Below the pieces are notes generated by a model. It saw only the letters and a list, made by a program, of their open reading frames with translations. It was not told where the DNA came from and ran no database searches. The translations under genes were made by a program, and so were the position numbers. Shown piece after piece: positions 31 through 24,882 of a DNA stretch of 25,055 nt (positions are counted from its first letter, which is position 1; the number at the start of each line of letters is the position of its first letter). The stretch is from Macrostomum lignano (Eukaryota): assembly GCA_002269645.1 (NCBI GenBank), contig NIVC01000517.1:1-25055 (forward strand). Reading direction: 5' to 3'.

Positions 31-1534
31 CTTGCATACGGTGCTCTCCCGTGACCCGATGATGAAGGGAGCTTCAGTTTCAATTGTGACGTAGCTGACT
101 GTGTAGTTGTTGAAGTCGTATGTCGTCAGCTTTGTGCCATTGTCAGTGGGCAAAATCATCTGTTCTACAAGCATAATTATTTCAAAAATATCTTAGTTGT
201 GTCAGTAAATTTCAGATCAAATTAGATTAATTCAACCGTTTTTTTAATTCTGTTATTTTTCAAACTCGATAAGTCCTACCAATGCAAGTGTATCCGTCGC
301 CATAGTAACCAGGGCGACAGGCGCAGAAAATGAGCCGGAGTGTTGCTGCAGATGGCGTTGACGTGACAAGCGAACTGCTGCACTGCGTCAATGTCTAGAA
401 ATAAAAAGTGTTAACTAGGCGATTAGGCACTGGGAAATAAAATAAAAAGATTCGATCAATTGATTCGCACAGCAAAACTCGTTTGTTACTAGTCAAAAAA
501 TACCCACCAGTGTTGCAGTTTGTCCCAGACCAGCCGGCAGGGCAGACGCACTGATACGGTTCACCCCGATCGATGCAGCTGCCTCTAACGCAGGGGTTTG
601 TAGCGCAGTCGTCAATGTCTGCAATATTTAGTAGTATATTTACGTCAGCACTTAGTTACCCTTAACAGTTCGTATTCATTCCCCACTGATATTCATTCCT
701 ACATTCGTCTGTACATTTCTGCTGCCGACCAGTCAATATGAAAGTTACGTGTATTAATTTACGTGCCTATCTCGCAGAGAAATCCATTGTAACCAGGCAC
801 ACACGTGCACTCAAAGTGGTGCTTGTAGTGCGACAGGTGGCTCCATTTTTGCACGGCGCACTGTCGCACAGCTTCGATGGGTCAACGATAATACCATCGC
901 CGTCGTTATTTGTAGCCGTTGTTACCACTTCTGGCGCGCAGGAGTCTGAGCTGTTGTATATACGTCTGAGCCTGTCGGAGCCGTGCATCCGATGGCGCCG
1001 ACCCGCAGTCCAATCAATAGTTGCGCCGTCTGTCGGAGCCGGTGCATCCGATGGCGCCGGACCCGCAGTCCAATCAATAGTTGCGCCGTCTGTCGAGCCG
1101 GTGCATCCGATGGCGCCGGACCCGCAGTCCAATCAATAGTTTGCGCCGTCTGTCGGAGCCGGTGCATCCGATGGCGCCGGACCGCAGTCCAATCAATAGT
1201 TGCGCCGTCTGTCGGAGGCCGGTGCATCCGATGGCGCCGGACCCGCAGTCCAATCAATAGTTGGCCGTCTGTCGGAGCCGGTTCATCCGATGGCGCCGGA
1301 CCGCAGTCCAATCAATAGTTGCGCCGTCTGTCGGAGCCGGTGCATCCGATGGCGCCGGACCCGCAGTCCAATCAATAGTTGCGCGTCTGTCGGAGCCGGT
1401 TCATCCGATGGCGCCGGACCCGCAGTCCAATCAATAGTTGCGCCGTCTGTCTCAAACGGTGAATCAGTTGATGCCGAATCTGTGGATTCTGTCGCTCAGC
1501 TGATATATCGGTAGTATAACTTGAGCTTGTGGCG
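31..1534 (-). CDS. Gene A (partial): MUC4/SUSD2-like membrane mucin paralogue; exons 1534-767 (mucin repeat + EGF), 618-508 (EGF), 394-280 (Ca-binding EGF), 164-31 (start of NIDO region); continues off the left edge
   Basis: Minus-strand translation gives KLCDSAPCKNGATCRTT..., DIDDCATNPCVRGSC...[42 protein letters not shown] and [35 protein letters not shown] (one GC) splice sites fall at the same positions and phases as in gene B. Several 1-bp indels interrupt the frames. Confidence 0.85.
972..1450 (-). repeat. 60-bp coding tandem repeat, ~8 copies, encoding TDGATIDWTAGPAPSD(A/E)PAP (mucin-like region of gene A)
   Basis: Unit ctgtcggagccggtgcatccgatggcgccggacccgcagtccaatcaatagttgcgccgt repeated; lies inside the exon that ends in EGF1. 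Confidence 0.95.
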
Positions 1535-3478
1535 CTGTTCAATTAAAAAAATCGTTGGTAGCTTTTTTATTAACGGATAAGCGAGAAATGACGTAGCGTG
1601 ATAACGTGGTTCAGCTAGATAATGCTAGGAACAGCTGCTTATAGTTGGACTGGCGGTCAATTTGCTTAGCTGAATCCAACAACAACAACAACAATACAAA
1701 TTGTCAGACAGTCAAGCGTAGGAAAATGTTACAGGGCGCATTTCAGGGCCTGAGCGCGAACATAGGCCGGACGGCCGGCAGTGTTCGGGGCGCCGGCATA
1801 ATCCAGCAGCAGTCGATGAAACGCCGTTTCCCTGTATCCCTACGACTGTATCCTAATTGCTGTAGCTGCATCCCTACGGCCCATTAGATGTCTTCTGACT
1901 TGTTTTATTTGTAAGTCAATCTGCTTTCAATAAAGTCAAATTGAGTTGAGAATCTCCATTCACTGCCAGCAGTAGTCTCTGCCATGGATGAATGAGACCG
2001 ACGAAGTGGAAGAATCAAAGCTGCATTCTCCAATAGACAGCAACCCAACCAAGCTTTTTAAAGCTATATTTTTAACGGTTAAAAATCAAGTACAGATATA
2101 GAGAACTTCGAGCCAAGATTATTTTAGCCTCGGAAAGGTCAAGTAATCTTTTAAGGTCTAGTGGCTACTCAGAAAGCGACAATCTCAAAGTTCATGTCTA
2201 CAAGTTTTAGCCTTAAGGCTATGAAATCGAGACCATTCCCGTACAGCAATCCGACCATGGCGACGTCACTGACAAATCTGTACTTTTCATTACATCGACG
2301 GATAACTACGTCATAGGTCGGCTGAATGTCTGTTAGTAACGTCGAATTGATGTACGGGATTGGAGCAGTCTAATAGCATGGAGCAAGGGTTTACATGATA
2401 CGTATTTTTATCAACGGTAGAGTTTGTTCTAAGCTATGACTGGCTGTGAGAGTATTTTCAACTTGTTTTTCAAATAGCATGACAGCCAAAATCAAAAGAA
2501 TAGACTACATGTAGTTGAGCAAGATGCAAAATCAACATCGAGTTGCTACTTACGAAGACATACGCAGAGAGCAAGCGCGACGCCAGTCAGAAAGCAAAAC
2601 GCACGCCTGCGCAGCATTCTAATCGGGTACTAATATAAAAATCGTTCAGTGTGTCGGTATAAAGTTTCTATTTGTAATTGCTTTAGTTTCGGAAACAGGC
2701 TTGTCTATTGTGCTCTGGGCTTGGTAGAAGAAGTCTGCTTTATCTCTATTAAATAGCTAACTGTTAGAGCTCAAAACGTCAGAATTTTTTCTAGTGTTCC
2801 GTTGCCAGAAACAGCTTAGAGTGAAGGCTTATGGCTTCGCCTCTGTCAGGATACAATGGGCTAGCTATGCTTAATACAGTGAGACGTCGGGGAAGAGCTA
2901 GCTGAGAATGCCTCTATAAGCTCTTTTCTTTTCATAAAATTTTGTTACCGCCATGCCACGACTTAGCTATGAAAAGCCATCGTCTGTTACTGCACTGAAT
3001 GAGTGGCTAAAAGTATTCTATTTCTTTTCGAATGTCTTAGATCTTTTTATTTCTAATACTGACAAATCCAACTGGTTGCAGCTGTTTCAATGCTTTTTTC
3101 TTCGCTTATTGTCTATTGTTCCACGGATGGAGCTGTCTGCATTCTGCCAACGACTGGTAGAAACGAAACGGCTTTACCGAAGATTCGTGAAGTTTGTAGG
3201 GCTTCTTCGCCTAGTTTTTATATTCTAATTTCATTTTAGTATAGCATGCAGCAGACAATGCAGAAGGTTTCGAGGTAAACAATATTCTTGAGCAAATTAT
3301 ATTTCACAAAGCACGTGCTCCCAATGTAGTACCAATGCACTGGACCGTAGACTGTAGCTTGACAGGTCTAGACAAAGCTAAATGTGCAACATAAGTCTAT
3401 AGAGGTATTGCAACAAATAGCTGTGACACTATATTACTTCTAAGTGTCATTTAAATTCGATAATTGCAAGTTTGATAT

Positions 3479-4653
3479 TGTAGTGAGCCGCTAGTTTGGT
3501 GTTGGGCGTCGCACTATTGTCAGCAGTTTCCCTCGCCCTCACCCTGGGTTGCTGTCTGCCGCTGGGCAGCCTCCCTTCCCTTTTTCTGCCTGTTCTCTGT
3601 CGCCCCCCTCTTCTCTGCGCTCTTGCTTGCAGCCACGAGCTTCTCTGCTGTGGCCTGCTCTACATTTCGTTCCTGTCCTGAGGTCACGCTGGTGGCCTGT
3701 TTCCCTTGTCATGTGAGCAAGTCCCCTGACAAGTCTTGTTTTCTTGAAGTCCTACAGTGCAGTCTACTGCACTTGCTGGTCCGTGTTTACTAAGGAATCA
3801 CGTGCCCAAGGCCCTTCTCTTCTCTAAGGAAAGGAGTGACTCATGTTTCTAAAAATAGACACTGAGTCACAGCTTGGCGCACTCTGCCCGAGGACCCAAA
3901 GTGACGTCAGTTCTAAAAATAGAACAAAGTCCCGAAGTCTTGTGCGCATTGGGGCAGTGGAGAATCCCAGGCTATAAATACGGACCCCATCATCTTTGGT
4001 TCAGTCAAGGAGGTTCTTAGTTTCAGTGTTTTCCAGTCTAACTCTTAGTCTAGTTCCAGTTCTTTTCTCAGTTTCCGAAGTTTTCTGACAGTTTTATTGT
4101 CCAATCAACTCTCCCTTTATTGGCCTGACTAAACTTAGATGCCCAAGCCTAAAGAAGGCTAATACAGCCTCCCCAACCACCCACTGAGCCCTGCGGGATC
4201 TGCTAACCAGATGCCTTGTTCGTTAATCTTGAAATCTGCACGCTGTGCTGAGTTCTTTGACTTGTTTATTTCGTTCTGACGGGAAGCTCACCTCACCGAA
4301 GGCCGAGACCGGAAGGAACTGGTGGCAGGACTACCTACGCTACGAAGAGGCTCGAGACTTAAGACCTACCAGGCCACCTCGAGACAACCCTGAGACAACC
4401 CTCAGTATTTCAATACATTTTATTTGGTATATTATCGTTTGTATATAGTTAATGAAAGTGATGGGTTCGGCCTTTTTAAGCCTATAGCTTCGGGCCTCAG
4501 AATTCAGAAATGAATCACTTAGAACTCTGGCCTCTCACTCCTGTCAGATGGTCAGCCCCATGGTAGCTGGATTGTGCGCGAGCAGCAAGGTCCTATAGCT
4601 AGGAGAAGACAGCGAGAGACAAGCAGGGAGATAAATAAAGGTAAATATCAACA
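3479..4653 (+). mobile_element. LTR-like, promoter-bearing repeat segment (family not identified)
   Basis: Starts TGTAGTG, has TATAAATA at 3973 followed by a CAGT-rich pyrimidine stretch, AATAAA at ~4634 and ends TCAACA. No TSD or partner LTR found, so boundaries are tentative. Confidence 0.35.
3799..3980 (+). promoter_or_regulatory. Pol II promoter-like module: E-box, AP-1/MEF2/AP-1, CRE/MEF2, TATA
   Basis: CACGTG 3799-3804; TGACTCA 3837-3843; CTAAAAATAG 3849-3858; TGAGTCA 3863-3869; TGACGTCA 3902-3909; CTAAAAATAG 3913-3922; TATAAATA 3973-3980. Confidence 0.5.
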
Positions 4654-4658
4654 TGAAG

Positions 4659-4676
4659 TTATTTATTTATTTATTT
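4659..4676 (-). repeat. (TAAA)n microsatellite at the 3' end of the Penelope-like element
   Basis: ttatttatttatttattt on the + strand, ~115 nt after the ORF stop codon. Confidence 0.7.
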
Positions 4677-4791
4677 GACATCTTCAGGGCGAAGTTTATT
4701 TGAACAAAATTATTGAACGCAAACAGTATATATATAGTGAGTGAAGTACATGTAATTTTGTTGGTTTAAAAACTTGTACATATTAATTAAA

Positions 4792-6299
4792 CTAGAATAT
4801 GCAGAGTTGACGGCTAGCCCCACCCATCGCGAGTTGATTATTTACCATGGGCTGTCTCGTTTTAATGTACAAGGCTTCTAATAGGCAGAGCATGTGATCT
4901 CTATTGCAAAAATCGATAGCCTTAATCATCTTGTGTGGGTCAGCGTCACAACAACTGTTGCAAGTTAGCAGGTGTTCGTTAATGGCAGAGGTTTAGCCAG
5001 TGCTCCCTGACCCTCGTGTACAAGTGTTGTTTAGTCTTTCCAATATAGGAGATGCTCTGTTCCTCAGAGCAAATAAATTTGTACAGGACACCTGCCGCGA
5101 GAGGACAAGGAACACTGAATTTCAGCCTACAGACAAACTTAACAACCTTTTCAGTGCGAAACACAACACGGATTTGAGTGTTTAAGTCTTTACGGAACAG
5201 CTTTTCAATCTTCTTTTTGAACTCGATAGAACATACCCCAAAGAAAGGTAAAGTGATCACGGAACAATCAGAGGTGGATTCACGAACTTTCATCTGAGTA
5301 GGTTCAGTCAGGTTGTCATTGAGAAAAGAGTTAACAATTTTCAACACAATGTTCCTAGGGTAGCCATTGTAGCTGAGCAAGTTGGTGAGGATTTCAACTT
5401 CATTGTGAAAGAGCCTCCAGGAACTGCAAATGGAAAAGGCCCGGTGAAGAAAGCAGCGAACCAATCCAACTTTCCATTGTCTAGGGCACAGGGCATCGAA
5501 CCTGAGCATAAGCCCGGTAAAGCTAGGTTTCCTAAACACACTGGTGGAAATAGTTTCATTGGTGGCATCAATGTCAATGTCTAAGAAAGGAAGTCTCCTG
5601 CCTCCCCTTCCACCGTAAATTTGATATTCTCATGAGTAGAATTGATAATGTTAAAAAACTCATTCTTCTTAGTTTCATCCTCAAAGATCGCAAACGTGTC
5701 ATCCACGTAGCGTTTGTAAAAGTGAGGCGCATACGTGAGGGACATCCAGTCCTTTTCCCAATGAGCCATGCACAAATTAGCGAGGGTTGGGGCGAGAGGG
5801 CTGCCCATGGCACAACCGTCAATCTGTCTGTAATATTTGTCCCGAAAAAGAAAGATGCCGGAATTGTAGCGAATTTGAGCATCTTCTTAAAAGTGGCTTT
5901 CGAGAACGGAGATGGATTGGCTTTTTCATACACAAGATCAGCAGCAAGCTCAATGGTGAATTCAAGAGGGATGTTGGTGAACAGAGAAACAACATCAAAG
6001 CTATAAAGCCTGTCAGTTTGATTAGTCGTGGTGTTGCTGAGGCACTCAATAAACTGTTTATTGGATCCCACACAGTGCTCAGTAGGAATGACAGGTTTAA
6101 TTAAATTGTCAAGGAATTTGGCTAGCTCATACTCCGAAGTGTTGATCATCGAAACAATTGGTCTTAAAGGATGACCATCCTTATGGACTTTGCACAGACC
6201 ATAGAGTTGTCCAGGTTGGCTACCACTTGGGACAATCACCTTAAAGATCTCAGGGCTCACATGCGGCTTGACATAAGTTCTCAAAAAATTCTGAAGAAC
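4792..6299 (-). pseudogene. PLE ORF: reverse transcriptase + C-terminal domain + GIY-YIG endonuclease, split by ~3 frameshifts (~5830, ~5580, ~4995)
   Basis: Motifs: LYGLCKVHKDGHPLRPIVS, SFDVVSLFTNIP, YRQIDGCAMGSPLAPTLANLCM, YKRYVDDTF, FLDIDI, VFRKPSFTG, KVGLVRCFLHRAFSICS, NGYPRN, LYKFIC..SYIGKT..RVREH, SAINEHLLTCNSC, EALYIKTRQPMVNNQ; stop TAG at 4794-4792. Confidence 0.9.
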
Positions 6300-6812
6300 T
6301 TATGCCAATAGCATTGTAGTAGGGCATTATTTTAGGAACGGGAATTATTGTGGGTTCAAATATGCCTTTTGCCTACTATCAGTAGTATCAACCCGGGAAA
6401 TAATTAGAGCGGGGGTAAATCGCTAGTTTTCGGGATCCTTTAGAAGTACAGAGCAGTTGGGCTCTTGGGAAAGCATCCCGTGGCAACCTGTCTTAGAAAC
6501 TCAGCTAAGAATCGGTAAGAAGGGAAAATATTAGGGGGAATAAGGGGAATACTTAAGTTGCACAAGAGGAGTCTTGCCTCTAACTGGGAGTCTTGCCCTA
6601 CGCACAAACGGGGAAACTTAAGATAGGAACTAATGTAAAGACCAATCTTTTGTACGTTAACGTTTTTCTTTTATTAAAACCTTATTAACTGTTGAAATCT
6701 CATTTGGTGTCCTGACTCAATTCTTTAAATCTGAATACCAGAATTAGGGAAAGCAGGAACCTGGTGGCAGCAAATCTACCAAAATCTAAAACCATTAAAT
6801 CCACTAGTATAA

Positions 6813-7178
6813 TCCTTAGCAATAGAAACCAGTAGCTTAACCCGCGAGGTACCACGCGTGTCCACCATCACCAACCTGTCTCGTCACCAACTCACGGTCA
6901 CCGAGCTCAACTGTTTGCAACATGACCTGCGTAACCCGACGCTACTAAAACTCATCAACAAGCTTAAAATCGCTGCTGAAATTGAATCTGGCCTGAGTAA
7001 GTGCCTAAAAACTGACAATTTGCGGGTTGACGGCGCTGTTCCACCCGATAAGCTTAAACACCGTATCATTGCTGAATTTGAAAAGTTTATCTGTAGAGCT
7101 CAAGGATACGTTAACAAGAAAAGCAATAGGCTTATGCACAGCGAGCCACTTTACAAGCAGGGAGAATTTGAAAGGTAG
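6813..7178 (+). pseudogene. Fragment resembling the pre-RT N-terminal region of a PLE ORF, in opposite orientation to the RT/EN part
   Basis: ITNLSRHQLTVTELNCLQHDL...KIAAEIESGL...KLKHRII resembles the NLS...LT..E..(L)..GL motif preceding PLE RTs; no RT follows on this strand. Confidence 0.55.
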
Positions 7179-8320
7179 AGATTAGCTAATCCGCAGATTA
7201 ACTAACCCGCTGCCACCAGTCCGTGCGCCCCGGCTCACCAAACCGGAGCTATCGAAATCGGACTTCCGACTAGAGGGGCACTGCACTTACCTGCCATCTA
7301 GTGTCTTTTAAGCTGTCTATCTCGAAGTCATAGCCGAATAGAAGGGACGCTGCTGGGACTAAGATCGCATTGGCCATGCAGAGACAGAGAGGACTTTTGC
7401 AGGGGGTTCTTGCGCTGGCGAGCCTTCATACACTACTAAATGTACTATTTCATTACCAAATTCCCAGAAGTACATGTAAAAGTACACGTAACTGCACGCT
7501 TTTGGCACTAAATGTGTTAACACGTCGACAGATAGCGATGATGTAGGTGCATTGTCACTTTCGGAGATCGTTAGACTAATATTTAACTTACTTTAGCTGC
7601 TTAACTGCCTGTGACCGCGCCAAAGCGCCAGTCTGGCACTTAATTTGCATGCTTAACATAATGATTTCTTAGATCGACTGATTGACTGGGAACTGTGCCG
7701 CTTCCGGTCCACTGTGACCTTTGCCCCTAGATCTAGCCACTCATCTCAGCTGGCATTGCGAAAAAGAAAGAAAACACTAAGTCTTTAACTTCCAGATTTA
7801 ACTTTCTCACTTAATCCGCAATCCTAAACACTTTAGATTGAGTTAGAGCAAATGGCTACTTTTAATATTAACTGACACTTCTGCCTCGGGATTGGCACAC
7901 AAAAGCAAGTAAGCAAAAGCGCAAATCCTATCAGACTACCTAGGGAGAGGTCAGTCAAAGGGTGCACCCAGTTAAGCAGGCCAAGAAAGCCTCTCACCAA
8001 ACCAATCAGAGGACCTATCTGCCGGTAGCCAAGGAATCCACAGAGACCGAAGCGCTCAGACGGGATGCTGCTGCTGATCTTGACTGACGATTGCCGCCGC
8101 TACTCTTCACTTGCCGAAGGTCGTTGCTGCTTTCGGTTCGCGGCCGGGAAAGACTGGTGACGTCTCCCGAGGGAAAACTTAGCTGCTGAAGCCGAAGCTG
8201 CCGGGGGAAGGGGGCTCAGATGCCGAAGGGGCAGCCGGAACAAGATACCAGCAAGCCCGGAAACACCCGAAGGGTCGGGGAAGCAGCCGGGGTTACTCGA
8301 GCGAGGGTCGAGTTGCCGCC

Positions 8321-8452
8321 TTTTATAGCTCTCACGCGGCCGATTTGTTATAACGCACGCTGAATTTTCCGATTGGCTGAGAGCTTTTGTTAAAATAGGC
8401 GCCGAATTTTCTGATTGGTCGAGCCGGGGGCAGTCAGGTCGACTCCGATTGG
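8321..8452 (-). promoter_or_regulatory. Triple CCAAT box + TATA promoter
   Basis: ATTGG on + at 8372, 8414 and 8448 (AGCCAATCGG / GACCAATCAG / AGCCAATCGG on -); CTATAAAAGG on - at ~8328-8319. Confidence 0.55.
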
Positions 8453-8503
8453 CTGAGCTCAAGACCCCAAAACCCACCCCACCAGGTCAGACACCAGGGA
8501 AGT

Positions 8504-8697
8504 TGACAGGTGCGGTCATAAATCATAAGCAAAACATAATAAGAGTCACTTGTCTAGACATCCTGGCGCCAAAAGTGACAGCAAAACGCCCATAAATCAA
8601 AGGAGAAAGCAACAGAGCGAGTGGGGAGAAAGCTGGAAAGACCTCTTTGACCCCGACAGGCTGGAGCCAAAAGTGACAGCTAGACGGCCATAAATCA
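8504..8697 (-). promoter_or_regulatory. Three composite PBX-HOX + MEIS/PREP-type sites
   Basis: Minus strand TGATTTATGG-N8-CTGTCA (8697-8674), TGATTTATGG-N8-CTGTCA (8599-8576) and TGATTTATGA-N6-CTGTCA (8525-8504). Confidence 0.55.
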
Positions 8698-9108
8698 CCG
8701 AAAACAGTAAAAAAGCCACAAATTTGGGGGTCAGAACGTGGTTGAAAACGTTCCTCCCAGACTTAGTGTCGCCTGTCTAGACTGTTGGAGGTCAATCCGC
8801 CTCAGACCCAGACAGTCTGACCTTCAAAGGTGCGTAAACAATCCAAAATTAGAATCCTAAGAGAAGTACATTGAGTTTCTAACATAACTAATAGTAATGG
8901 CATAAAATAGTATAGAACTTAGCCTAGATGAGAGAATGGAGAGAAATTCCTAAGCTAGCCTACTTACAGTAGGGGAAAAGCGCATCGAAGCAAAATGTGC
9001 GGTTCTAAGATTGAAAAAAGTGCGTCCTCATCAAAAGCTTTAAACTACTGTTATTAAAAAAGAATTTACAGACTTATTAACAAAAACTAAACAAGACTAT
9101 ACGCGTAT

Positions 9109-9604
9109 CAGGGGCGGATTTAAGGGGGGTTGGGCGATGGGGGGGCGGCCCCCCTTGTGGCTGGCAATGATGGCGCCCCTTTTCCCCTTTTCTTTTGGGC
9201 TAAACAAAGTTCCTCATCGCTGTCAGTTTGCTCAGTATGGCGCCCCTCTCGTCTATGGTGCCCCTCTCGTCTATGGCGCGCCCTCTCGTCTATGGCGCGC
9301 CCTCTCGTCTATGGCGCCCCTCTCGTCTATGGTGCCCTCTCGTCTATGTCTATGGCGCGCCCTCTCGTCTATGGCGCGCCCTCTCGTCTATGGCGCCCCT
9401 CTTGTCTATGGCGCCCCTCTTGTCTATGGCGCCCCTCTTTGTCTATGGTGCCCCTCTCGTCTATGGTGCCCCTCTCGTCTATGGCGCGCCCTCTCGTCTA
9501 TGGCGCCCCTCTTGTCTATGGCGCCCCTCTCGCGTATATTATGGCGCCCCCGCTCTTATGTTTAAAATCGGCCCCCTCATTTTATATTTAAAAATCCGCC
9601 ACTG
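9109..9604. mobile_element. Non-autonomous hAT-type DNA transposon (MITE) carrying a minisatellite
   Basis: TIRs CAGGGGCGGATTT (9109-9121) and AAATCCGCCACTG (9592-9604) match 12/13; perfect 8-bp TSD ACGCGTAT (9101-9108, 9605-9612). Confidence 0.92.
9236..9551. repeat. 18-19-bp minisatellite, ~17 copies (ctatggcgcccctctcgt)
   Basis: Direct inspection; no unique spacers between units. Confidence 0.95.
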
Positions 9605-10319
9605 ACGCGTATACTTCAAACCGATGGAGTTCTAACCTTTTTTTCATTTAAAAAAAAACACACTGACAGTTTAAACCGAAAGAAAGCTGGGGCTATTATT
9701 AGCCATCGTGCCATGACCTTTGTGCCTGCTGGGCACTTATTCTTGCCATTTAATGCCACAGACTACATTTAAGCCCGCTTGCAGGACTTTAATGCTTTAA
9801 ACTTACTTTAATGCAATTAGCGGGCAGTTAATGACATTTTACGCCCGATTATTCTGTCCCACTTTGTCATGGACACAAATGTCTATGGCTCAATAATAGT
9901 AATACCCATGCTAACGGCGCCCTCTGATTTTCTTATTAACGCCCTTAAAGCATGGGTATTAATGTACAGTTGGGTCCGTGGAAAGGGTCTAAGTTTCCGC
10001 GGAATGGTCGCGGAATTCCGTGGAAAACTGTGTGAAATGCGCTCCTATTGGCTAGGCCAATGGGATTTCCCGAATACTTAGAGGTGAAATTTCCCGAATC
10101 GATGGGATGGCCCAGGAATCTATATTGTTCCTTGACTATGCTACTTTTTCCTTTATATAGCAGCACCTTATGAACGAGATTTAAAGCCATGCTTGCTAGT
10201 TGTCATATATATAGCCTTGTGTGCTTCGATTAATCTGGATTAATATTTATTGATGTCTGGCCATTACGTCACCGAAAATCAAAGGGCTGAAATGTTGAAG
10301 CGCTTTTTTATACAAAACA

Positions 10320-14607: not shown

Positions 14608-14759
14608 CGCTCTTATGTTTAAAATCGGCCCCCTCGTTTTATATTTCGAAATCCGCCACTGACGCGTTTACTTCAAACCGATGGAGTTCTAACCTTTTTT
14701 TCATTTAAAAAAGCACACTGACAGTTTAAACCGAAAGAAAGCTTGGGCTATTATTAGCC
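13871..14759. mobile_element. Partial second copy of the hAT MITE (right half, right TIR ending 14661) plus ~100 bp of its original flank
   Basis: 14600-14759 matches 9545-9706, including the TIR, the TSD-like ACGCGTTT and flanking DNA; the left TIR is absent. Confidence 0.9.
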
Positions 14760-15735
14760 ATTAGCACGCGAGCTGCGAATGCCGCTATGTGAGTGTCTGC
14801 GGAGTGAGATGCGGATGGGGGGTCATTATTATTTCAAGCAACCTCCCAGCCTCCGAGGTTGTTAAGATTATAAATTGCACTAGAGGGGCGTTACTGTCTC
14901 GAGAACTTCTATTGAAGTGGTATAGGACCGGAAAATAACGAGTGGAAAAAAACAATGAGAGCTTGTCTGAGGGCTCGGACATTGAGTAGTTTAAAACAGC
15001 CGAGTGGGCAGGAGGACGGCAATTAAATTCTCTTGTATTCGCTCGCGCGTGTTCTCTTAACGGTGCAGGGACGTCTAAATTTATATAGACGTCTGGATAG
15101 ATAATTGACTGGCTCCGTCTGCAACAGGGCAACCATGTAGATACTGTCACCCCCCCCCCACCCAAAAATATCCCCCAGCTAAAGGTAGATGTGTAGGCCA
15201 TTAATCCATCTAAGGCAGCTGATGGCAATGTAAACTGGCTAGTTAAAATTTTGTCGAGGTTTGATGCTTGTAAAAAACTCTTTTACCAGTCCAGATACTG
15301 TTTTCAGGACTCCCCTGTCGCTATTTTTTATGCAGTTATGAACTTTCTTTCCTCAACAGGTATATGGCGCCATTTTCTTACGGAAGGTGATATAGAATTA
15401 GCACACACGGAGTTGGTAGCCAAGGTGCGGGTGAGGCTGCTACCCCCCCCCCAACCCCAAAGAGCAATTACAGCTTCTTAACGATGCGTTGCCATTAGAA
15501 ACAACGGCTTCATTATGCTTTGCTCAAACCCCTCTATAGACGATACTTACGAATTTTATTGTTTTTTTCTGTCACCCGTTCGGGTTAAGCTATACAGAGA
15601 AACAAGCATGCAATGACAAGCTATTTTTAATGAAGAGTGTCATTTCATTAGTTACGAAAACCTTAGGTGCTACCTTAGCTAATGACGAATCGACTCAATA
15701 GAGCTGGACAACCTGTGGATTATAACATTAATTAC

Positions 15736-16158
15736 CAATCAAAAATTGTTTGTACAGCGGCTTCCACTCTTGTTTGTTTATTTCAAATATGACAGCGGCT
15801 GAACAGTGGCACTGGTTCAGGTTGATTCGGAATGAACTATGAGAAGGAACTATGAGAAAGTCAGGTAAATGCGCCAACGTGTCAGTTGAATGTGAAGCTC
15901 TGTCAGTCGGGTGAGGCCCTTTGTAAGTTAAGTTGAGTTGAATGTGGTCAGTATCATTGGCGCGTGGTGCGTCAGTTGGTGTGTCAGTTGGTGTGTCAGT
16001 TGGTGTGTCAGTTGGTGTTTCAGTTGGTGTGTCAGTTGGTGTGTCAGTTGGTGTTTCAGTTGGTGTGTCAGTTAGCCCGAAGTCCTGTGTCAGCCAGGCG
16101 AGTCTCTGGGTCAGCAATTTGCATCTGATTGGTTGCGTTTTAACCAATTCAAAGTTGA
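15736..16158 (-). CDS. Candidate exon with Thr/Pro/Asp repeat (TPTD/TPTE), possibly a 5' exon of gene A
   Basis: 423 nt, open, phase 1-1; acceptor tttttttctaatcAG and donor G|GTAATT; same strand as the mucin genes. No homology recognised. Confidence 0.4.
15971..16073. repeat. 12-bp tandem repeat, ~8.5 copies (gtcagttggtgt)
   Basis: Direct inspection; encodes TPTD/TPTE on the minus strand. Confidence 0.95.
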
Positions 16159-16192
16159 CTGATTAGAAAAAAATCAGTTTAATAAAACTTAC

Positions 16193-16270
16193 TTGCGATT
16201 GTCGTAGCAAGGGCTATGAAAAGTATGAGGTGAATATTATATAGCACTGCGCTCAAGAGTAAATTTCAGT
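16193..16270 (-). CDS. Candidate signal-peptide exon (LLLSAVLYNIHLILFIALATTIA)
   Basis: Hydrophobic frame ending in phase 1 at a GTAAGT donor (16192-16187), in frame with the 16158 exon. No intact ATG as sequenced (actgaaattta) and the implied intron is only 34 nt. Confidence 0.3.
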
Positions 16271-16646
16271 TGCTGTACGTCCAAATGGAAAGTGAGTTCA
16301 GATATCACATTGAAAAAGAACAGCAATTTACAAGCCTCAACGGTTTTTTTTTCAACAAAAAGATTTCAATGTGCTTTTATATTTAGCTGTGAATACAGGA
16401 GGATGGTAACTTTATGCCAAAACGGTTAGAAAATATTAGAATTCACACACTGAAAGAACTTAAAACAAAGGAAAAAACAAGAGGTCATTGGACGGTCATT
16501 AATTCATAAATATTGATAATATTGAAAATATTGATAAATAAAAGGCATACAAATAGCTATTAGTTAATTTGGTTAAATAATATGTGATCAAGTTTTCAAT
16601 GATTGCTACCAAGTTAAAAAGGCAAACTTAAACCCATGTAACAATT

Positions 16647-16652
16647 TTTATT
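16647..16652 (-). terminator. Candidate polyadenylation signal of gene B
   Basis: AATAAA on the minus strand ~290 nt after the stop codon. Confidence 0.45.
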
Positions 16653-16938
16653 AGTGTGCACATTTTTCTTCTGAAAACAAATAGCAGTTACTCCTAATAA
16701 AAAAATGATTGTTGCCATGGTAATTGAAATATTGGCAGTATCCGTGTAGTTTGCGTAAAATAGACAGATAAATTAAAAAAGCCCAATTATTGAATCATCG
16801 ATCAAATTAAATTCATTCACATAGTACTTATAATTAGATAGATAATATGATAGATAGCTAGCTCTTTTGCTAGTCAAAATCAAAGTCAAAGTTTCAAATT
16901 CAACGCACACTCCCGAACAAGATCAATAATTTAATCTG

Positions 16939-17078
16939 TTAACTTGTTCCGGACGTCGGGTTCACCAGCACTTCAACGGGAACCCTCGCTCTGAGACCAA
17001 ACACGATCGAAAGTACGACGACCGTAACGAGGACCACACCGCCAACCACGGACAGCGAGATGATCAAAGCCTGGTTTT
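16939..17078 (-). CDS. Gene B last exon: transmembrane helix and short cytoplasmic tail
   Basis: [46 protein letters not shown]. Confidence 0.9.
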
Positions 17079-20000
17079 CTGAAATACAGAAATATAGCAT
17101 AAAAATGAAAAAAGTCAGTAAAAAGACAATAAAGCAATCGTTGGACTACCCTCTTATTCCTACTACATGGCCTATTTGGCCTACTTGGTCTTAGTCTCTC
17201 GCCTGACTAAACCCACCTCGGCCGACCCTCGCTAACCCGAACCCACTTCCAGCCAAACCTCGCCTGTTAAAATCAGCTTCCGACTATTAGACTGTAAAAT
17301 ATACAATTCTATACATAGTTGTCCATTCCAGAGAAAGGACTATACAAAGAAGCAGTGCACTCACGATTGTTGGTTTCGCCTCCTGTCGCCGTGGTGGCAC
17401 TGTCGACAACATCTACATTGATCTGCACCGAGACGCAGGCGCCGTTGACTTTGATCTTGTTGTGCGCACAGTCACAAGAATAGTTGCCGATGTTATTAAT
17501 GCAGATGTAGTCACCGCCGCAAGGATTCGTAGAGTTCACTCGACACTCGTTGATGTCCTGAATTCAAAATCGTTTCGATGCTTTCCATGACTTTTTCACT
17601 AACGCTAAACTTTACAAGAATTTTGTGATTGTGAAAGCAACTACTTTTCCGTTACAATATAGCACAGCTTCTTACCATAGCAGAAAATAATGTGACCGAA
17701 TTCACACCTACGGAAATCACCCTTACCTCGCATTCGTAGAGCGCGTTCAGCTTGAAGCCGCCATCGGACACGTGCACGTGTAGGACCCGTTCGTGTTCAC
17801 GCACGTCTGGTTCTGATCGGCTCTGCACCGATTGTCCCCGGTGGCGCATTCGTCGATGTCTTCGCACAAACTGGAGTTGCTAGGCGACACCCGAAGCGGG
17901 AGTGGTGCAGTTGCACCGGTAGCCTGGGACCAAGTTGGTGCACTGCTCCTGACAGATGCCGGGAGTCTCCAGGCATTCGTCGTATCTGCAGTTATATGTT
18001 AAAACGATCAGAAAGCATCATCGGCAGACTCACGAAGAATATTAATTCCCACAATAACTTGATAATATAGATCGATAAATAAAGGTCCTGGATCTTACCT
18101 TCGCACACCTGTCATCACCCACCATCCCATCGGGGCAGCTGTCACAGTAGTAACTACCGTTGCTGTACATGTGGCACATGCTGGCATTGTAGCAAGGATT
18201 CGGCTGTGCCGAGCAGGGCGTCACGTCGCACCTGTCACCTTGGTAGCCACTGGGACAGCTGCACTGTGCACGGTAGAAGTTCTCTGCAGTGCGTTACAAA
18301 TGAATTTTATACATTTGGTTTCACAGATTTATACGCATTCGACCCTACAAAGTAAGTTGAAGAAGTAAATTTATAGTAAATGAAAGCAGTACCTCCAACC
18401 ACTGTTTCCCCAGTCGTGTAGTTGAAGCTGTGTGTGGCTCCGTTCTCGCAGTCGATGTACAAGACGACTGGCGTCCAAGAAGTCGGTGCTCCCATCGAGT
18501 CAGTGGCCACGATCGTCAAGTTGAAGGCGCTGATGTTTTATGCCGACTGCCACACCAGCATGTTGCCGTCGAGCCACATCGAAGTGTCGTTGCTGGGCTC
18601 CTGGATGCTCAACACGATAGGATTTCCGTCTTTGTCGGTGACGTTGATGGTCAAGTTGAAAGTTGTCGACGAGTAGATCGTGATGTTTGTTAGGCATGTT
18701 AAACTCTGGAGCAAAGTTTGAGGCCACCGCCTTTGCCGACACCTCCTGGCTGACCGCCAACGAAGCTTCTTCTGCAGCGTCGAGTGACTGCAGTTGTGCT
18801 GCGTCGTACATGCAGCTCAAGTAGATGGACTGCTCTGCGTTCCAGCAAGTCTGCAACATCAAAGCATTTAGTATTGAATGCAATGTGATATTGAGCAGCC
18901 AATAGTGTGATTGTCTACAAAGTGCCGACTTACCTTGTTTGCCGACGTCATAAGCTCCGAGTTGTTGTGGAACAGGTCCAACAAGTTATCCTTGTAGTCC
19001 TCGACAAACACCGGAACGAAGGACATGTTACAGAAGTCCGCTCGAGTCTTTCCGCTGGATACGGAAGTGACTCACGTCGCTCGACTGCAGCGCCCAGCTC
19101 TGACCGAAGTGGAACAGGTCTCGCTCCGAGCTGTTTCAGGAAAGAGGGTGCCGTTTCGTAGCTTGAAGTCGTCAGTTTTGTTTCCGTTGAAGTTGCCCAT
19201 GAGTCCTTCCACTTCGCTGGCGTGTCTCAGCTGGTCGAGCTGCACCGATGCCTGCAGCAGACTAAGAACTCTGTCGACGGTCACGGAGAAGCCAGTGTCC
19301 GACTCGCTGATGCTGATGCTCTTGTTGTCGTTTGACTTCAGTGTGTACTTTTCGATGGTTGTGGAGTTCTCCTGTTCGGAGAAGTACGTGAGCACACTGC
19401 CCAGCAACTCGTTGTCTTTGTACACGTCCAGGTCGTTTGAGCTCGTGTTAAGCCAGAACAGAAATGGAACAGTTGTTGGAGCCGGCCTTGAGCGCAAATC
19501 CGATGAAAACGGTAGCCGATGCGGTGACATTCGGATTGAGTGACTTTGCCAGACCCGTTCGGCTTGCAACTCGAGCATAGGAGCACTCTGCGAGCTGTTC
19601 CTGATCATGTAGTACTCGCACAAGCCATTGAAGGAGTACGTGATTCCGTCGATAGTGCTAATGTGAGGATCACCTCGATTGAAACCTGTTTCGTAAATTG
19701 AAAGAATCAGTTAAGACTTAGTAGTAAACTATTGCTAAGCTAAAATGACAAGTTCAGCCTGTTTGCTCACCCCAAGCCGGTTCGGTGTAGTCTCGACTGT
19801 TGCACTTTGGCCGGAACTTCTTGTACTTTCCAATCACCTTTGCCCGCTCGGCAAACGTCATAGCCATACGTCTCGTTTCTGAGCTGCTCGTCGTACTTGA
19901 TCCACCACCAGTAGTTCTGGTTCGTTCTCTCCAGAATCATGCTGTGTCCCGCTCCTTGCACAGTACTCTTGATTAAGAGAGCCACTCTGGCGTCTGTCGA

Positions 20001-23000
20001 ACATGATGTTGCGCAACGCCAGCGCATGCTCCACACCGAGTAGCCGGCGTCGCAGTAATCCACGAGTATGGCCGTCCTTCTTCCAGTGTACCTTGAGCTT
20101 GTAGCAACATCTTGGCGCAGCGTAGAACTGACACCGCATGAACCGGTTGCAGTACCAGTTCCACCACGGATAAGGACATACTGGCGGATTTGTAAAGTTC
20201 CTGCACGCACTCAAATCTGCCTCGGAAGCACATGGTGAGCTTATAGTTTCCTTTCTCATTCTGGTTTTTCTTGTCGCAAGATACTCATATGGCCAGTAGC
20301 GCCAGTCCAACACCGCTTGCGCATGTCTCGAGGGCAAGTGCGGCAGCTCAACTTCGTCGTAAGAGGTCGTTTGCGCTCGTTGTCCATCCATTTTTGCACT
20401 TGAGCTTGTCGCTAGGAGGGATGGAGTCCGCCATTATCCTTACGTGTCTTCCGACTTTTCCGACATTGCCCATGACCTTATTGTCGGTGACATAATTGCT
20501 GCCACCAGTAGTAGCTAAAGGGCAACCTGTCGAATTTCTGGTAACCGTCAGTGAAGCCTGCCGCGACGTAGAAGTACCGCCAGCGCCACTCGCTCATCTC
20601 GAACTGTCCGTAGTTAAAGATGACGAAGGAGTGGCTCTCGTTTCTGGTGACGATTGCTTGGAAGCTGATGTGCTGCGGGAGTTTGCAGGAGTTTGATTCT
20701 GCTTAATAAAATTTAAAATTTCTATTGCAAGGCACCCAACATAATACGGTACATTTACTTTTCTACCTACGCAGTAGAACCTACACTGTTGCCTACCCAT
20801 ATTAAAACGATGGCGAGGCATATATTATGCAAGACTGAAGGGCCTGTCTTACCTCCTGCTTGGGGTCGCAGTACTTGCAGTAGTATTGAGCCCAGCTGTA
20901 CCCCAGCTGTTTATAGTAGTAGTTGCAGTAGCGATTACAGTAGTAAACGTAGTAGCTGTACGGCTGCATCTTATTCCAGGTGACGATGAGTGCATTCAGC
21001 GGATTGTAGGTATCGCCTCCGCTGAAGCTGGTAATAATTTCCACAACCTTTTTCCAGTTCTGCGTGTTACTGTGCTGTGAGCTGTCCAGCAACTCGTAGT
21101 AGACGGCGGAGTCTGGGTAGGCGAACGAATACCGGTAGGACCAATAGGGAAACACCATCGGCTTCACCAGGTAGGTGTACCAGGTAGGCCAGGTCAGCTG
21201 GTACGGTGGATCCGAAAAGGACAGGTAGCCGTCTTTAGAAATCTGTATTAATTTCGTGTGGATTGCATAAATTAGCTAGCAAAATGGTTCGATTTGAATA
21301 GTCGAACAAGTTAATGGCTTGAGTCTGCATACCTTGCATACGGTGCTCTCTTGTGATCCGATGATGAACGGAGCTTCAGTTTCAATTGTAACGTAGCTGA
21401 CTGTGTAGTTGTTGAAGTCGTATGTCGTCAGCTTTGTGCCATTGTCAGTGGAAAGAGTCATCAGTTCTGTAAGTCGGAAAATTTGACAAATTTACGGTTT
21501 TTTCGGGTACAGAACTTACAGTGTTATTCGGATTTTTTAATTGCGTATTTTTGTCTTACCAATGCAAGTGTATCCGTCGCCATAGTAACCAGGGCGACAG
21601 GCGCAAGAAAATGAGCCCGGATTGTTGCTGCAGATGGCGTTGACGTGACAAGGCGAACTGCTGCACTCGTCAATGTCTGCAATAGGGATTGTAGTTTGCT
21701 TTCAATTTCTAGGAAGTCTGATAGATTGACAATTTTAATATTTGCTTTTGTTAATATGGTATTTATATTGCATACAGAAAACCCAGACCGAGAAAGAAAA
21801 TGCATACAAAAATATTACCTGTGTTGCAGTCGATGCCTGACCAGCCAGAGGGGCAAACGCACTGAAATGCATTCACTCGGTCAATGCAACTGCCTCTAAA
21901 GCAAGGCATTTGTGCGCAGTCATCGGTATCTATAAATATTGAATCAAGTAAGGTTGGCAAATATGGTTCCATATGTTGCTTGAATAGGCGTGACTTATTT
22001 GAAAATAACATAAATCAATTAAACTTACTGATTTCGCAAAGAGATCCTTGGTACCCAGGCAAGCAACTACATGTAAAGTACGTTTCTGTAGTGTGACAAG
22101 TGGCCCATTTTTACATGGCGCACTGTTGCACAGCTTCGACGCGTCAACGATAACACTGCCGCTACTAGTAGTGCCAACAACAACTGGTGGCAGCGTAGTG
22201 ACACCTGCTACAGTAGACTGGGGAGCCGCACTCGATGGCTGATTAGCAGTGGACTGAGGAGCAGCGGTGGACTGAGGATCAGAACTGGACTGAGGAGCAG
22301 CGGTAGACTGGGGATCAGAACTGGACTGAGGAGCAGCGGTAGACTGGGGATCAGAACTGGACTGAGGAGCAGCAGTGGACTGAGGAGCAGCGGTGGACTG
22401 GGGATCAGAACTGGATTGAGGAGCAGCAGTGGATTGAGGAGCAGCAGTGGATTGAACATCAGAAGTTGATGATGGATAAGACTGCGGTTCGGCAGTGCTC
22501 GGCTGAGGTCCAGTCGAAGGCGGATCAGACTGCGGTTCGGCAGTGCTCGGCTGAGGTCCCGTCGAAGTCGGATCAGACTGCGGTTCGGCAGTGCTCGGCT
22601 GAGGTCCCGTCGAAGTCGGATCAGACTGCTGTTCAGCAGTGCTCGGCTGAGGTCCCGTCGAAGGCGGATCAGACTGCGGTTCGGCAGTGCTCGGCTGAGG
22701 TCCAGTCGGAGTCGGATCAGACTGCGGTTCGGCAGTGCTCGGCTGAGGTCCAGTCGGAGTCGGATCAGACTGCGGTTCGGCAGTGCTCGGCTGAGGCCCC
22801 GTCGAAGGCGGATCAGACTGCGGTTCGGCAGTGCTCGGCTGAGGCCCCGTCGAAGGCGGATCAGACTGCGGTTCGGCAGTGCTCGGCTGAGGTCCCGTCG
22901 AAGTCGGATCAGACTGCGGTTCGGCAGTGCTCGGCTGAGGTCCCGTCGAAGGCAGATCAGACTGCGGTTCGGCAGTGCTCGGCTGAGGTCCCGTCGAAGT

Positions 23001-24882
23001 CGGATCAGACTGCGGTTCGGCAGTGCTCGGCTGAGGTCCCGTCGAAGGCGGATCAGACTGCAGTTCGGCAGTGCTCGGCTGAGGTCCCGTCGAAGGCGGA
23101 TCAGACTGCGGTTCGGCAGTGCTCGGCTGAGGTCCCGTCGAAGTCGGATCAGACTGCGGTTCGGCAGTGCTCGGCTGAGGTCCAGTCGAAGGCGGATCAG
23201 ACTGCGGTTCGGCAGTGCTCGGCTGAGGTCCCGTCGAAGGCGGATCAGACTGCAGTTCAGCAGTGCTCGGCTGAGGTCCCGTCGAAGGCGGATCAGACTG
23301 CGGTTCGGCAGTGCTCGGCTGAGGTCCCGTCGAAGTCGGATACGACTGCGGTTCGGCAGTGCTCGGCTGAGGTCCCGTCGAAGGCGGATCAGACTGCTGT
23401 TCAGCAGTGCTCGGCTGAGGTCCCGTCGAAGTCGGATCAGACTGCGGTTCGGCAGTGCTCGGCTGAGGTCCCGTCGAAGTCGGATCAGACTGCGGTTCGG
23501 CAGTGCTCGGCTGAGGTCCAGTCGGGGTCGGATCAGACTGCGGTTCGGCAGTGCTCGGCTGGGGTCCAGTCGGGGTCGGATCAGACTGCGGTTCGGCAGT
23601 GCTCGGCTGAGGTCCAGTCGGAGTCGTATCAGACTGCGGTTCGGCAGTGCTCGGCTGAGGTCCCGTCGAAGGCAGATCAGACTGCGGTTCGGCAGTGCTC
23701 GGCTGAGGTCCCGTCGAAGTCGGATCAGACTGCGGTTCGGCAGTGCTCGGCTGAGGTCCCGTCGAAGGCGGATCAGACTGCAGTTCAGCAGTGCTCGGCT
23801 GAGGTCCCGTCGAAGGCGGATCAGACTGCTGTTCAGCAGTGCTCGGCTGAGGTCCCGTCGAAGTCGGATCAGACTGCGGTTCGGCAGTGCTCGGCTGAGG
23901 TCCCGTCGAAGTCGGATCAGACTGCGGTTCGGCAGTGCTCGGCTGAGGTCCCGTCGAAGTCGGATACGACTGCGGTTCGGCAGTGCTCGGCTGAGGTCCC
24001 GTCGAAGTCGGATCAGACTGCGGTTCGGCAGTGCTCGGCTGAGGTCCCGTCGAAGTCGGATCAGACTGCGGTTCGGCAGTGCTCGGCTGAGGTCCCGTCG
24101 AAGGCGGATCAGACTGCGGTTCGGCAGTGCTCGGCTGAGGTCCGTCGAAGGCGGATCAGACTGCGGTTCGGCAGTGCTCGGCTGAGGTCCCGTCGAAGGC
24201 AGATCAGACTGCGTTCGGCAGTGCTCGGCTGAGGTCCCGTCGAAGGCGGATCAGACTGCGGTTCGGCAGTGCTCGGCTGAGGTCCCGTCGAAGGCGGATC
24301 AGACTGCTGTTCGGCAGTGCTCGGCTGAGGTCCCGTCGAAGTCGGATACGACTGCGGTTCGGCAGTGCTCGGCTGAGGTCCCGTCGAAGGCGGATCAGAC
24401 TGCTGTTCAGCAGTGCTCGGCTGAGGTCCCGTCGAAGTCGGATACGACTGCGGTTCGGCAGTGCTCGGCTGAGGTCCCGTCGAAGGCGGATCAGACTGCG
24501 GTTCGGCAGTGCTCGGCTGAGGTCCCGTCGAAGGCGGATCAGACTGCGGTTCGGCAGTGCTCGGCTGAGGTCCCGTCGAAGGCGGATCAGTCTGCGGTTC
24601 GGCAGTGCTCGGCTGAGGTCCCGTCGAAGTCGGATCAGACTGCGGTTCGGCAGTGCTCGGCTGAGGTCCCGTCGAAGGCGGATCAGACTGCGGTTCGCAG
24701 TGCTCGCTGAGGTCCCGTCGAAGGCGGATCAGACTGCGGTTCGGCAGTGCTCGGCTGAGGTCCCGTCGACGGATAAGCAGTGTTTCTGTATGTCAATTGT
24801 TGACTCTACGACGCCATTCGATTCTGTTGTTGCAGGTGCAACAATTGCTGTTTGGGATACATTGGGGATACAGTTAGGATAC
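16939..24882 (-). CDS. Gene B: MUC4/SUSD2/Mesh-like type I membrane mucin (PTS repeat - 3xEGF - NIDO - AMOP - VWD - Ig/cadherin-like - ~5xEGF - TM). Exons 24882-22029, 21929-21819, 21676-21560, 21466-21333, 21242-20853, 20672-19771, 19685-18934, 18850-18393, 18283-18099, 17985-17727, 17557-17365, 17078-16939
   Basis: Domain motifs read directly; GT-AG introns with consistent phases at most junctions. More than 15 single-base indels and one in-frame TAA (18540-18538). The 5' boundary (24882) is tentative and the N-terminus lies off the window. Orthology to MUC4/SUSD2 is not established. Confidence 0.9.
17365..18283 (-). CDS. Gene B membrane-proximal EGF / Ca-binding EGF exons (three exons)
   Basis: [97 protein letters not shown]. 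Confidence 0.9.
18393..19685 (-). CDS. Gene B VWD domain (GDPH), Cys-containing linker and Ig/cadherin-like segment (two exons)
   Basis: [84 protein letters not shown]. Confidence 0.9.
19771..21466 (-). CDS. Gene B NIDO and AMOP domains (three exons)
   Basis: [28 protein letters not shown]...[17 protein letters not shown] (NIDO); [32 protein letters not shown] (AMOP, across frameshifts). Confidence 0.88.
21560..22150 (-). CDS. Gene B three N-terminal EGF repeats
   Basis: [30 protein letters not shown] (one indel), [73 protein letters not shown]. Confidence 0.92.
22240..22460 (-). repeat. 18-bp coding repeat (QSTAAP / QSSSDP), second tier of the gene B mucin region
   Basis: ggactgaggagcagcggt / ggactggggatcagaact units, in frame with the 48-bp array and EGF1. 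Confidence 0.9.
22480..24770 (-). repeat. 48-bp coding tandem repeat, ~48 copies, encoding [15 protein letters not shown](P/T) (mucin PTS domain of gene B)
   Basis: The minus frame cct tcg acg gga cct cag ccg agc act gcc gaa ccg cag tct gat ccg is continuous with the EGF exon; 1-bp deletions at ~24142, 24212, 24697 and 24706. Confidence 0.95.

Follow-up and report, generated by a model that had tools for sequence, protein, structure and literature searches.

The first 25,055 nucleotides of scaffold NIVC01000517.1 of the flatworm Macrostomum lignano (assembly Mlig_3_7, GCA_002269645.1), a stretch which we analysed as a whole and call the window, probably hold two tandem, same-strand paralogues, genes A and B, of a MUC4-type type-I membrane glycoprotein, whose many frameshifts would be errors of the assembly and whose common core would be kept alike by gene conversion. 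About 14 kb separate the two genes, which are encoded on the minus strand; their introns are of the GT-AG type, with one GC donor in A as an exception. Coordinates and supporting evidence are collected in Table 1. The window itself is a 25-kb contig block between the scaffold start and a run of 1987 N, which starts at position 25056 of the record (25056-27042; L004 4868-6854). From 10478 to 25055 it agrees with the scaffold record at identical coordinates, with 100% identity and 0 gaps.

Two MUC4-type genes in tandem

Gene A, which is annotated as BOX15_Mlig013855g1/Mlig018549g2, is present in the window as far as its first NIDO exon, and its remainder runs off the scaffold start; the continuation is found in two other stretches of the assembly, L005 and L003. 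The proteins annotated there, P0207 and P0204, were placed on L005 and L003, respectively, with 12 introns and 0 frameshifts, using a frameshift-aware protein-to-DNA alignment of our own. These intact copies consist of a signal peptide, a stalk, three EGF domains, a NIDO domain, an AMOP-like region, a VWD domain with a GDPH motif, further EGF domains and a transmembrane segment. The initial annotation, which was made from the letters of the window alone, had supposed that gene A carries AMOP and VWD downstream, and full-length P0207 does have both NIDO (residues 402-608; PF06119, 38.4 bits) and VWD (837-1012) by Pfam. Within the window, the signal peptide of exon 1 matches the N-terminus of P0204 and P0207 exactly, the frame of exon 2 follows P0207 only if 13 single-base frameshifts are admitted, and the EGF3 exon differs from both B and P0207 by four 1-bp indels (net -2). 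The donor after EGF1, at window position 767, is GC in gene A (G/GCACGT) and GT at the equivalent codon of gene B (A/GTAAGT). A search with the N-terminus of gene A returned generic EGF proteins only.

Gene B, newly identified here, is probably a full MUC4-like gene that is concealed by assembly errors. Because of residual 1-bp errors it is annotated in the public assembly only in pieces, such as P0208, which covers exons 3-5 (21333..21929) and stops at a frameshift near 20500. The acceptor of exon 2 is predicted at 24847; exons 6-7 contain about 10 frameshifts; and the 10-residue stretch of the VWD domain that bears GDPH is encoded at 19685-19656. Exons 9-12 (18850-18393, 18283-18099, 17985-17727 and 17557-17365) have an intact equivalent in P0209, whose C-terminus is also that encoded by exon 13, where a 23-residue hydrophobic segment was identified by inspection. 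In the frame-corrected protein, Pfam recognizes three EGF domains, NIDO (PF06119, 42.4 bits against a cut-off of 25), VWD (PF00094, 50 bits against a cut-off of 22.9, with the GDPH motif) and three EGF_CA domains. A protein search with the core of gene B found distant M. lignano proteins only, and look-ups of exact matches to open reading frames of the window, to P0002 and to P0205 gave no result.

The two genes share exon lengths and phases around EGF1-3 and NIDO, as the initial annotation had noticed: 111, 117 (115 in A, through 1-bp indels) and 134 nt, with the EGF junctions in phase 1. In one respect its gene model has to be changed, since the repeat arrays do not occupy an exon upstream of EGF1. 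The reading frame passes from array to EGF1 without a splice site, and so the array and EGF1 lie together in exon 2 (1534-767 in A, 24847-22029 in B).

Redundant copies of the locus and the origin of the frameshifts

Past the N gap, the scaffold continues with an inverted second copy of the locus (96-98% identity), so that its order is A(-) B(-), N gap, B'(+) A'(+); the copy pairs A and A', and B and B', are 96-99% identical. This layout probably reflects the joining of two copies of a single locus during scaffolding rather than a real palindrome. Contig NIVC01000340.1 (L005) ends in a third representation of the locus, with a complete gene A (P0207). As for NIVC01000517.1, its first 25 kb are a redundant, badly polished block. 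According to PMC5730564, Canu assembled the PacBio reads, Pilon was used for polishing and SSPACE for scaffolding; 63.95% of the bases are error-free, and duplicated blocks amount to 180 Mb, a consequence of additional chromosomes in the line that was sequenced.

As the window is printed, the reading frame of both genes is broken. Gene A has 17 frameshifts in 404 codons and no stop codons, while gene B has about 26 frameshifts, of which 21 fall between EGF2 and the stop, four within the array and one in EGF1; its frame-corrected codons, more than 1200 in number, include no stop codon. When window positions 1-12639 are compared with NIVC01000340.1, the two differ by 68 gaps and 2 mismatches. 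B' has 14 frameshifts, which are listed at other locus coordinates than those of B; no cross-mapping of the positions was made, and, roughly mapped, two of the B' frameshifts lie close to shifts in B. The C-terminal 434 residues of B are intact in P0209, a protein of the older ML2 annotation. In a four-way alignment of the core, the ratio of private indels to private substitutions is 27:12 in B, 25:25 in B' and 3:15 in the intact A'.

An in-frame TAA near 18540, considered as proof that B is a pseudogene, was discarded, as it sits between two compensating 1-bp shifts and is gone in the frame-aware alignment. A similar pair of compensating 1-bp indels occurs in EGF2 of gene A (window 560-580), where the window reads IDRGEPYQC and the intact copies IDRVNAYQC; the frameshift count thus underestimates the errors. 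Judged by these sequences, the frameshifts of the window are best explained as unpolished long-read consensus errors in a redundant block rather than pseudogenisation, and poor short-read polishing of duplicated blocks fits their pattern.

Genes A and B are paralogues

Between A and B, neither the introns surrounding EGF1-3 nor the final two can be aligned. EGF1 and EGF2 together have a synonymous divergence (dS) of about 1.2 and a ratio of nonsynonymous to synonymous divergence (dN/dS) of 0.16, while dS over EGF3 and the first NIDO exon is about 0.10; at the other end of the genes, identity is 80% in the last EGF exon and 72% in the exon encoding the transmembrane segment and tail. Moreover, the order B-then-A on one strand is found in two blocks with differing intergenic DNA. 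On these sequence comparisons, A and B are best regarded as tandem same-strand paralogues, and the mis-joining of allelic haplotypes, a possibility raised by the initial annotation, does not account for them. Its description of a diversifying cluster, in contrast, found no support, as there are only two genes here and the further copies on the scaffold are a redundant assembly of the same locus.

Two UniRef entries, P0205 and P0210 (A0A1I8H9S7 and A0A1I8H9D2), represent a third paralogue in M. lignano, which has the core in common with A and B and for which no genomic place was found; its transmembrane segment and tail are like those of B, and its EGF and NIDO residues are different. The family may hence be larger than two genes in M. 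lignano.

Unrelated stalk repeats in a common exon

Both Tandem Repeats Finder (TRF) and the consensus translations agree with the arrays first described for the two genes, of 60 bp in A and of 48 and 18 bp in B. Read on the minus strand, array A has the consensus translation TDGATIDWTAGPAPSDAPAP, and its 20-residue unit takes the form TDGATIDWTAGPAPSD(A/E)PAP. Among the eight units there are 2 substitutions and 9 one-base indels, and their pattern of Glu and Ala is the same in the window and in P0207. The array comprises eight units in P0207 and six in the second genomic copy, P0204, a difference in copy number that is new, if modest. By composition (40% Pro+Thr+Ser, 20% Ser+Thr and 15% Asp, with a Trp), the unit of A looks like a weak, borderline mucin repeat. 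Array B1 is 62% Pro+Thr+Ser over a length of about 840 residues, and contains 14 peptide variants and four 1-bp deletions (at 24707, 24698, 24214 and 24144).

The arrays of A and B had been taken for unrelated cassettes, and no homology was detected against shuffled controls: array units, leaders and linkers of the two stalks are no more alike than these. A candidate for hidden homology, between ESTIDIQK in the leader of B and GATIDW in the unit of A, was rejected, as 255 of 500 and 374 of 500 shuffles reached the DNA score and the local protein alignments gave p values of 0.35 and 0.66.

Two relatives bear on the place of the stalk in the protein. L001, a Logan contig of RNA-like sequence (SRR30276804), contains an intronless open reading frame of 1134 residues, P0006, which stays open up to the contig's 5' end and in which a third, unrelated and non-repetitive stalk with 49% Ser+Thr precedes the same EGF1-3-NIDO architecture. 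It is 70% identical to A and B in protein, with saturated synonymous sites, and probably stems from a different species of Macrostomum or represents a distant paralogue. A HMMER search with a distant M. lignano relative had found P0006, and a word search with P0006 led to P0204 and thereby to the locus. In M. lignano itself, the relative Mlig002447 (P0005) shares the core but lacks a stalk, its EGF following directly after the signal peptide. Together, the third stalk of L001 and the stalkless Mlig002447 strengthen the view of the stalk as an add-on.

A converted core between diverged ends

In contrast to the two ends of the genes, which are diverged (stalk, EGF1 and EGF2 at one end; the last EGF, transmembrane segment and tail at the other), exons 7-11 of B and A' are 98-99.5% identical, and the four introns between these exons 95.5-100%. 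Near-identity of a 3-kb core that includes its introns points to gene conversion. In the four-way alignment, 16 sites group A and B against A' and B', as would be expected of paralogues that exchange sequence inside each chromosome copy, and 19 sites split A from B. Upstream of the tract, identity of A and B is 89-97% over the EGF3 and NIDO exons, and their introns cannot be aligned; the low dS of EGF3 and the first NIDO exon next to such an intron suggests either short conversion tracts or constraint limited to the exons. About 22 nt of the intron after the NIDO exon are conserved between the two genes.

Compared with the expressed relative L001, the core has a dN/dS of 0.07. We read these alignments as evidence that the A/B core is kept partly by purifying selection and partly by conversion of a 3-kb tract that falls short of both ends. 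A conversion tract with such sharp module boundaries is a new, modest finding. The initial annotation had proposed that the stalk was re-invented while the core was kept; unrelated stalks on a shared scaffold are in line with the first half of this, and the second half needs amending in that conversion, and not selection alone, has kept the core.

Domain family

The NIDO-AMOP-VWD core assigned to these genes at the outset was recovered by Pfam as far as NIDO and VWD are concerned, and AMOP went undetected, its support coming from profile-profile comparison only. The Pfam model PF03782 gave no match in B, P0002 or P0207, even at an E value of 10. However, the same model also misses the frog 'mucin-4' P0019 at E 0.001 and reaches only E 0.04-0.25 with the linkers of invertebrate mucin-like proteins; because of the frog case its silence is weak evidence either way, and we dropped it as an uninformative test of membership. 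In an hhalign comparison, the middle region of the flatworm proteins matched the NIDO-VWD linkers of mucin-like proteins over the whole linker, with two insertions, at 97.3% probability and E 2e-11, which suggests that the region between NIDO and VWD is AMOP-like.

Neither B nor P0207 matched the Somatomedin-B (PF01033) and Sushi (PF00084) domains of SUSD2, the SEA domain (PF01390) of the SEA-type mucins MUC1, MUC3, MUC12, MUC13 and MUC17, or the C8, TIL and cystine-knot (CK) domains of gel-forming mucins, and each has a single VWD. The absence of these domains excludes SEA mucins, SUSD2 and gel-forming mucins. Relatives named mucin-4 or mucin-like are found in frog, oyster, Lingula, nemerteans, a crinoid, amphioxus and Trichoplax, with phmmer matches that cover VWD and the region downstream of it; orthology with MUC4 is not shown by these matches. 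A sequence search of the PDB gave matches to EGF domains only and no solved structure for the part from NIDO to VWD, and the searchable literature has no mention of SRR30276804 or of the gene identifiers of this locus.

Other features of the window

A remnant of a Penelope-like retroelement occupies 2.5 kb of the window (4643-7153), with open reading frames at 4795-6300 on the minus strand, split across three frames, a reverse-transcriptase match (RVT_1, E 3e-07) and a weak GIY-YIG match. The window alone carries it, and its absence from L003, the second copy of the locus, indicates an insertion polymorphism between genome copies.

Between genes A and B lies a composite repeat (9236-14718) with inverted arms at 9964-10477 and 13340-13818 (91-96% complementary) and direct repeats at 9517-9661 and 14574-14718 (95% identical). 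A 1.5-kb satellite rich in AG, with periods of 10/17 bp (10334-11819), is flanked by two minisatellites that are related to each other, one of 18 bp (9236-9532) and one of 23 bp (13885-14607); contig NIVC01000340.1 apparently ends inside the 23-bp array. A BLAST comparison of the window with a second M. lignano locus, L002, found only the AG-rich satellite in common. Further along, a 12-bp microsatellite, TGGTGTGTCAGT, is repeated 9 times at 15965-16073; its minus strand reads as TDTPTE repeats, without gene context.

Table 1. Features of genes A and B and of the further copies of their locus (window positions unless another place is named)
Feature	Position	Strand	Content	Evidence
Gene A exon 1	2554..2617	minus	signal peptide MLRRRAFCFLTGVALALCVCL; donor C/GTAAGT, phase 1	hydrophobic-start scan and reading
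Gene A exon 2	767..1534	minus	leader (PPQAQGYTTDISAEATESTDSASTDSPFE), 60-bp array, linker, EGF1; GC donor, phase 1	
Array A	972..1451	minus	8 units of 60 bp	TRF period 59/60, 8.1 copies, score 879
Gene A exon 3 (EGF2)	508..618	minus	111 nt, phase 1 at both ends	Pfam EGF
Gene A exon 4 (EGF3, calcium-binding type)	280..394	minus	115 nt here; 117 nt in intact copies	
Gene A exon 5 (first NIDO exon)	31..164	minus	134 nt, ends in phase 0	
Gene B exon 2	22029..24847	minus	leader, 48-bp array, 18-bp array, linker, EGF1 (first Cys 22130)	
Array B1	22474..24769	minus	16-residue unit	TRF period 48, 47.9 copies, score 4095
Array B2	22245..22455	minus	STAAPQ/SSSDPQ alternating	TRF period 18, 11.7 copies, score 254
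Gene B exon 3 (EGF2)	21929-21819	minus	111 nt, phase 1	Pfam
Gene B exon 4 (EGF3)	21676-21560	minus	117 nt, phase 1	Pfam
Gene B exon 5 (NIDO exon 1)	21466-21333	minus	134 nt, ends in phase 0	
Gene B exons 6-7	19771..21242	minus	rest of NIDO (21242-20853; 20672-...), cysteine-rich AMOP-like region to 19771	
Gene B exon 8	18934..19685	minus	VWD with GDPH at 19674-19663	Pfam VWD E 5e-13
Gene B exons 9-12	17365..18850	minus	post-VWD region and four EGF-like domains	Pfam EGF_CA
Gene B exon 13	16939..17078	minus	transmembrane segment (~17070-16993), ~19-residue tail, stop at 16939	
Predicted conversion tract	17727..20672	minus	exons 7-11, ~3 kb	BLAST to L003 and L005, per-exon/intron table, four-way alignment
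B'	past the N gap	plus	from the EGF2/EGF3 intron to the stop	
A' (P0204, BOX15_Mlig018549g2)	in L003, beyond B' and ~11 kb of intergenic DNA	plus	6 repeat units	
P0207 (BOX15_Mlig013855g1)	in L005		1492 residues, 8 array units	

Discussion

We weighed three other explanations against that of two intact, tandem MUC4-type paralogues. A and B might be a decaying pair of pseudogenes, with real frameshifts, neither window copy of which makes a protein, and the sheer number of frameshifts in both genes, together with the fragmentary annotation of B (P0208 ending at one of them), speaks for it. But the same A allele reads through without a frameshift on another contig, from which the window differs by 68 indels as against 2 substitutions; the frame-corrected codons of B contain no stop; the numbers of frameshifts differ between B (21) and B' (14), as do their coordinates, which were not cross-mapped; the 3' third of B is intact in P0209; and indels exceed substitutions, the opposite of neutral decay. 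We thus regard a pseudogene pair as very improbable, and pseudogenisation of the stretch of B from exon 2 to exon 8 as unlikely. Still less credible, to the point of being nearly dismissible, is the existence of one gene only, of which A and B would be haplotypes or polyploid copies that the assembler set side by side. The sequenced line, DV1, is a hidden polyploid with a redundant assembly, and the scaffold does hold redundant inverted copies, B' and A'; yet the redundant pairs are A with A' and B with B', and not A with B, which differ in their stalks, in EGF1 and EGF2, in their unalignable 5' and 3' introns and in transmembrane segment and tail. B precedes A in both blocks, although the intergenic DNA differs and the Penelope-like insertion is confined to the window.

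A more serious alternative, though one that we still find unlikely, accepts both genes and denies that they are functional mucins: like Mesh or SUSD2, their products would serve as receptors in adhesion or at junctions, and the repeats would form an acidic spacer with little glycosylation that determines how far the proteins reach. In its favour, Mlig002447, the closest M. lignano relative, has the same core without a stalk, the unit of A is poor in Ser and Thr (20%) and contains Trp and 15% Asp, and the core is under strong constraint, as would be expected of the working part of the protein. On the other hand, the 62% Pro+Thr+Ser of the B unit over some 840 residues is typical of mucin domains, the stalk of L001 is likewise rich in Ser+Thr, and the Sushi and somatomedin-B domains of SUSD2 are absent. 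Several observations do weigh against a pair of intact MUC4-type mucin genes. The composition of the A unit makes heavy O-glycosylation of A doubtful; the AMOP model of Pfam is silent; the signal-peptide exon of gene B was not seen and is placed beyond the window, in the N gap; no intact full-length B was found in any accessible source, so that its first two thirds are presumed intact by analogy and by the indel-to-substitution argument; and the two blocks may stand head to head only through an artefact of scaffolding.

The vertebrate counterpart that the two genes resemble most in plan is MUC4, with a large single exon of Pro/Thr/Ser tandem repeats (the B unit being of 16 residues, or 48 bp), followed by NIDO, a cysteine-rich linker, VWD with GDPH, EGF domains, one transmembrane helix and a short tail; with the M. 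lignano relative as query, frog mucin-4 matches over VWD and the downstream region at E 1.7e-33. Unlike vertebrate MUC4, the M. lignano proteins have three EGF domains between stalk and NIDO, four instead of two or three after the VWD region, and an AMOP-like region of about 220 residues with two insertions and without one Cys of the CC pair. The mucin-like and mucin4-like proteins of invertebrates (corals, sea anemones, Lingula, nemerteans, amphioxus and Trichoplax) share NIDO, linker, VWD, a C8-3-like region and EGF arrays, but most have many more EGF_CA domains and often SEA. In the literature examined, long exact tandem arrays near the N-terminus are not described for them; the low-complexity Pro/Thr/Ser regions of the sea anemone mucin4-like proteins are reported to be highly variable and unconserved (PMC9080433). 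Mlig002447 is alike in its signal peptide, EGF domains, NIDO, long cysteine-rich middle and VWD with GDPH (36-43% identity), and differs in that it lacks a stalk, has just one EGF following the VWD region and ends, without a tail, in a hydrophobic C-terminus.

Human MUC3A, MUC3B, MUC12 and MUC17 each have a repeat domain of their own. They are described as adjoining membrane-mucin paralogues on chromosome 7 with a common C-terminal scaffold (PMC9578598). Unlike that of M. lignano, this scaffold is made of SEA and EGF and has no NIDO or VWD. The gain of mucin function through exonic repeats has been termed 'mucinization' in mammalian secreted proteins (Pajic et al. 2022, PMC9417175). The case presented here is similar in that a repeat-free scaffold (Mlig002447) has relatives that gained exonic Pro/Thr/Ser repeats, of which 6 or 8 units are present in the copies of A, and differs in that it concerns a flatworm membrane protein with a converted core common to the paralogues.

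By analogy with the family, the protein would be inserted in the plasma membrane, with an O-glycosylated stalk projecting the molecule from the cell surface, and its VWD would be cut autocatalytically at GD/PH, so that a stalk-bearing subunit is held on a membrane subunit; the chemistry of the GDPH motif is treated in PMC10880436. Each paralogue has expanded a different short sequence within exon 2, of 60 bp (6-8 times) in A, and of 48 bp (48 times) and 18 bp (12 times) in B. Going further, we tentatively propose that one MUC4-type scaffold was mucinized at least twice independently, through unrelated expansions in the same exon, and that ongoing conversion keeps its 3-kb core and stops sharply before the stalk-EGF1-EGF2 and the transmembrane-tail modules. 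The outcome might be one core with exchangeable outer and inner ends, perhaps serving different surfaces, and with a stalk length that varies between genome copies.

The kind of locus is already known: tandem paralogues with unrelated stalks are ordinary mucin-gene evolution, and gene A was already annotated as a hypothetical protein. The current understanding of mucin evolution, in which conserved scaffolds with unconserved repeat domains are the rule, is therefore unchanged. To it the gene pair adds a documented case of conversion with sharp module boundaries and of repeat-number variation between genome copies. M. lignano gains a pair of MUC4-like surface glycoprotein genes in a tractable laboratory flatworm, in which RNA interference is in use. 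Transgenesis is possible as well (PMC5730564). Since stalk identity and length are here separable from a near-identical core, the pair lends itself to studies of the contribution of a mucin stalk.

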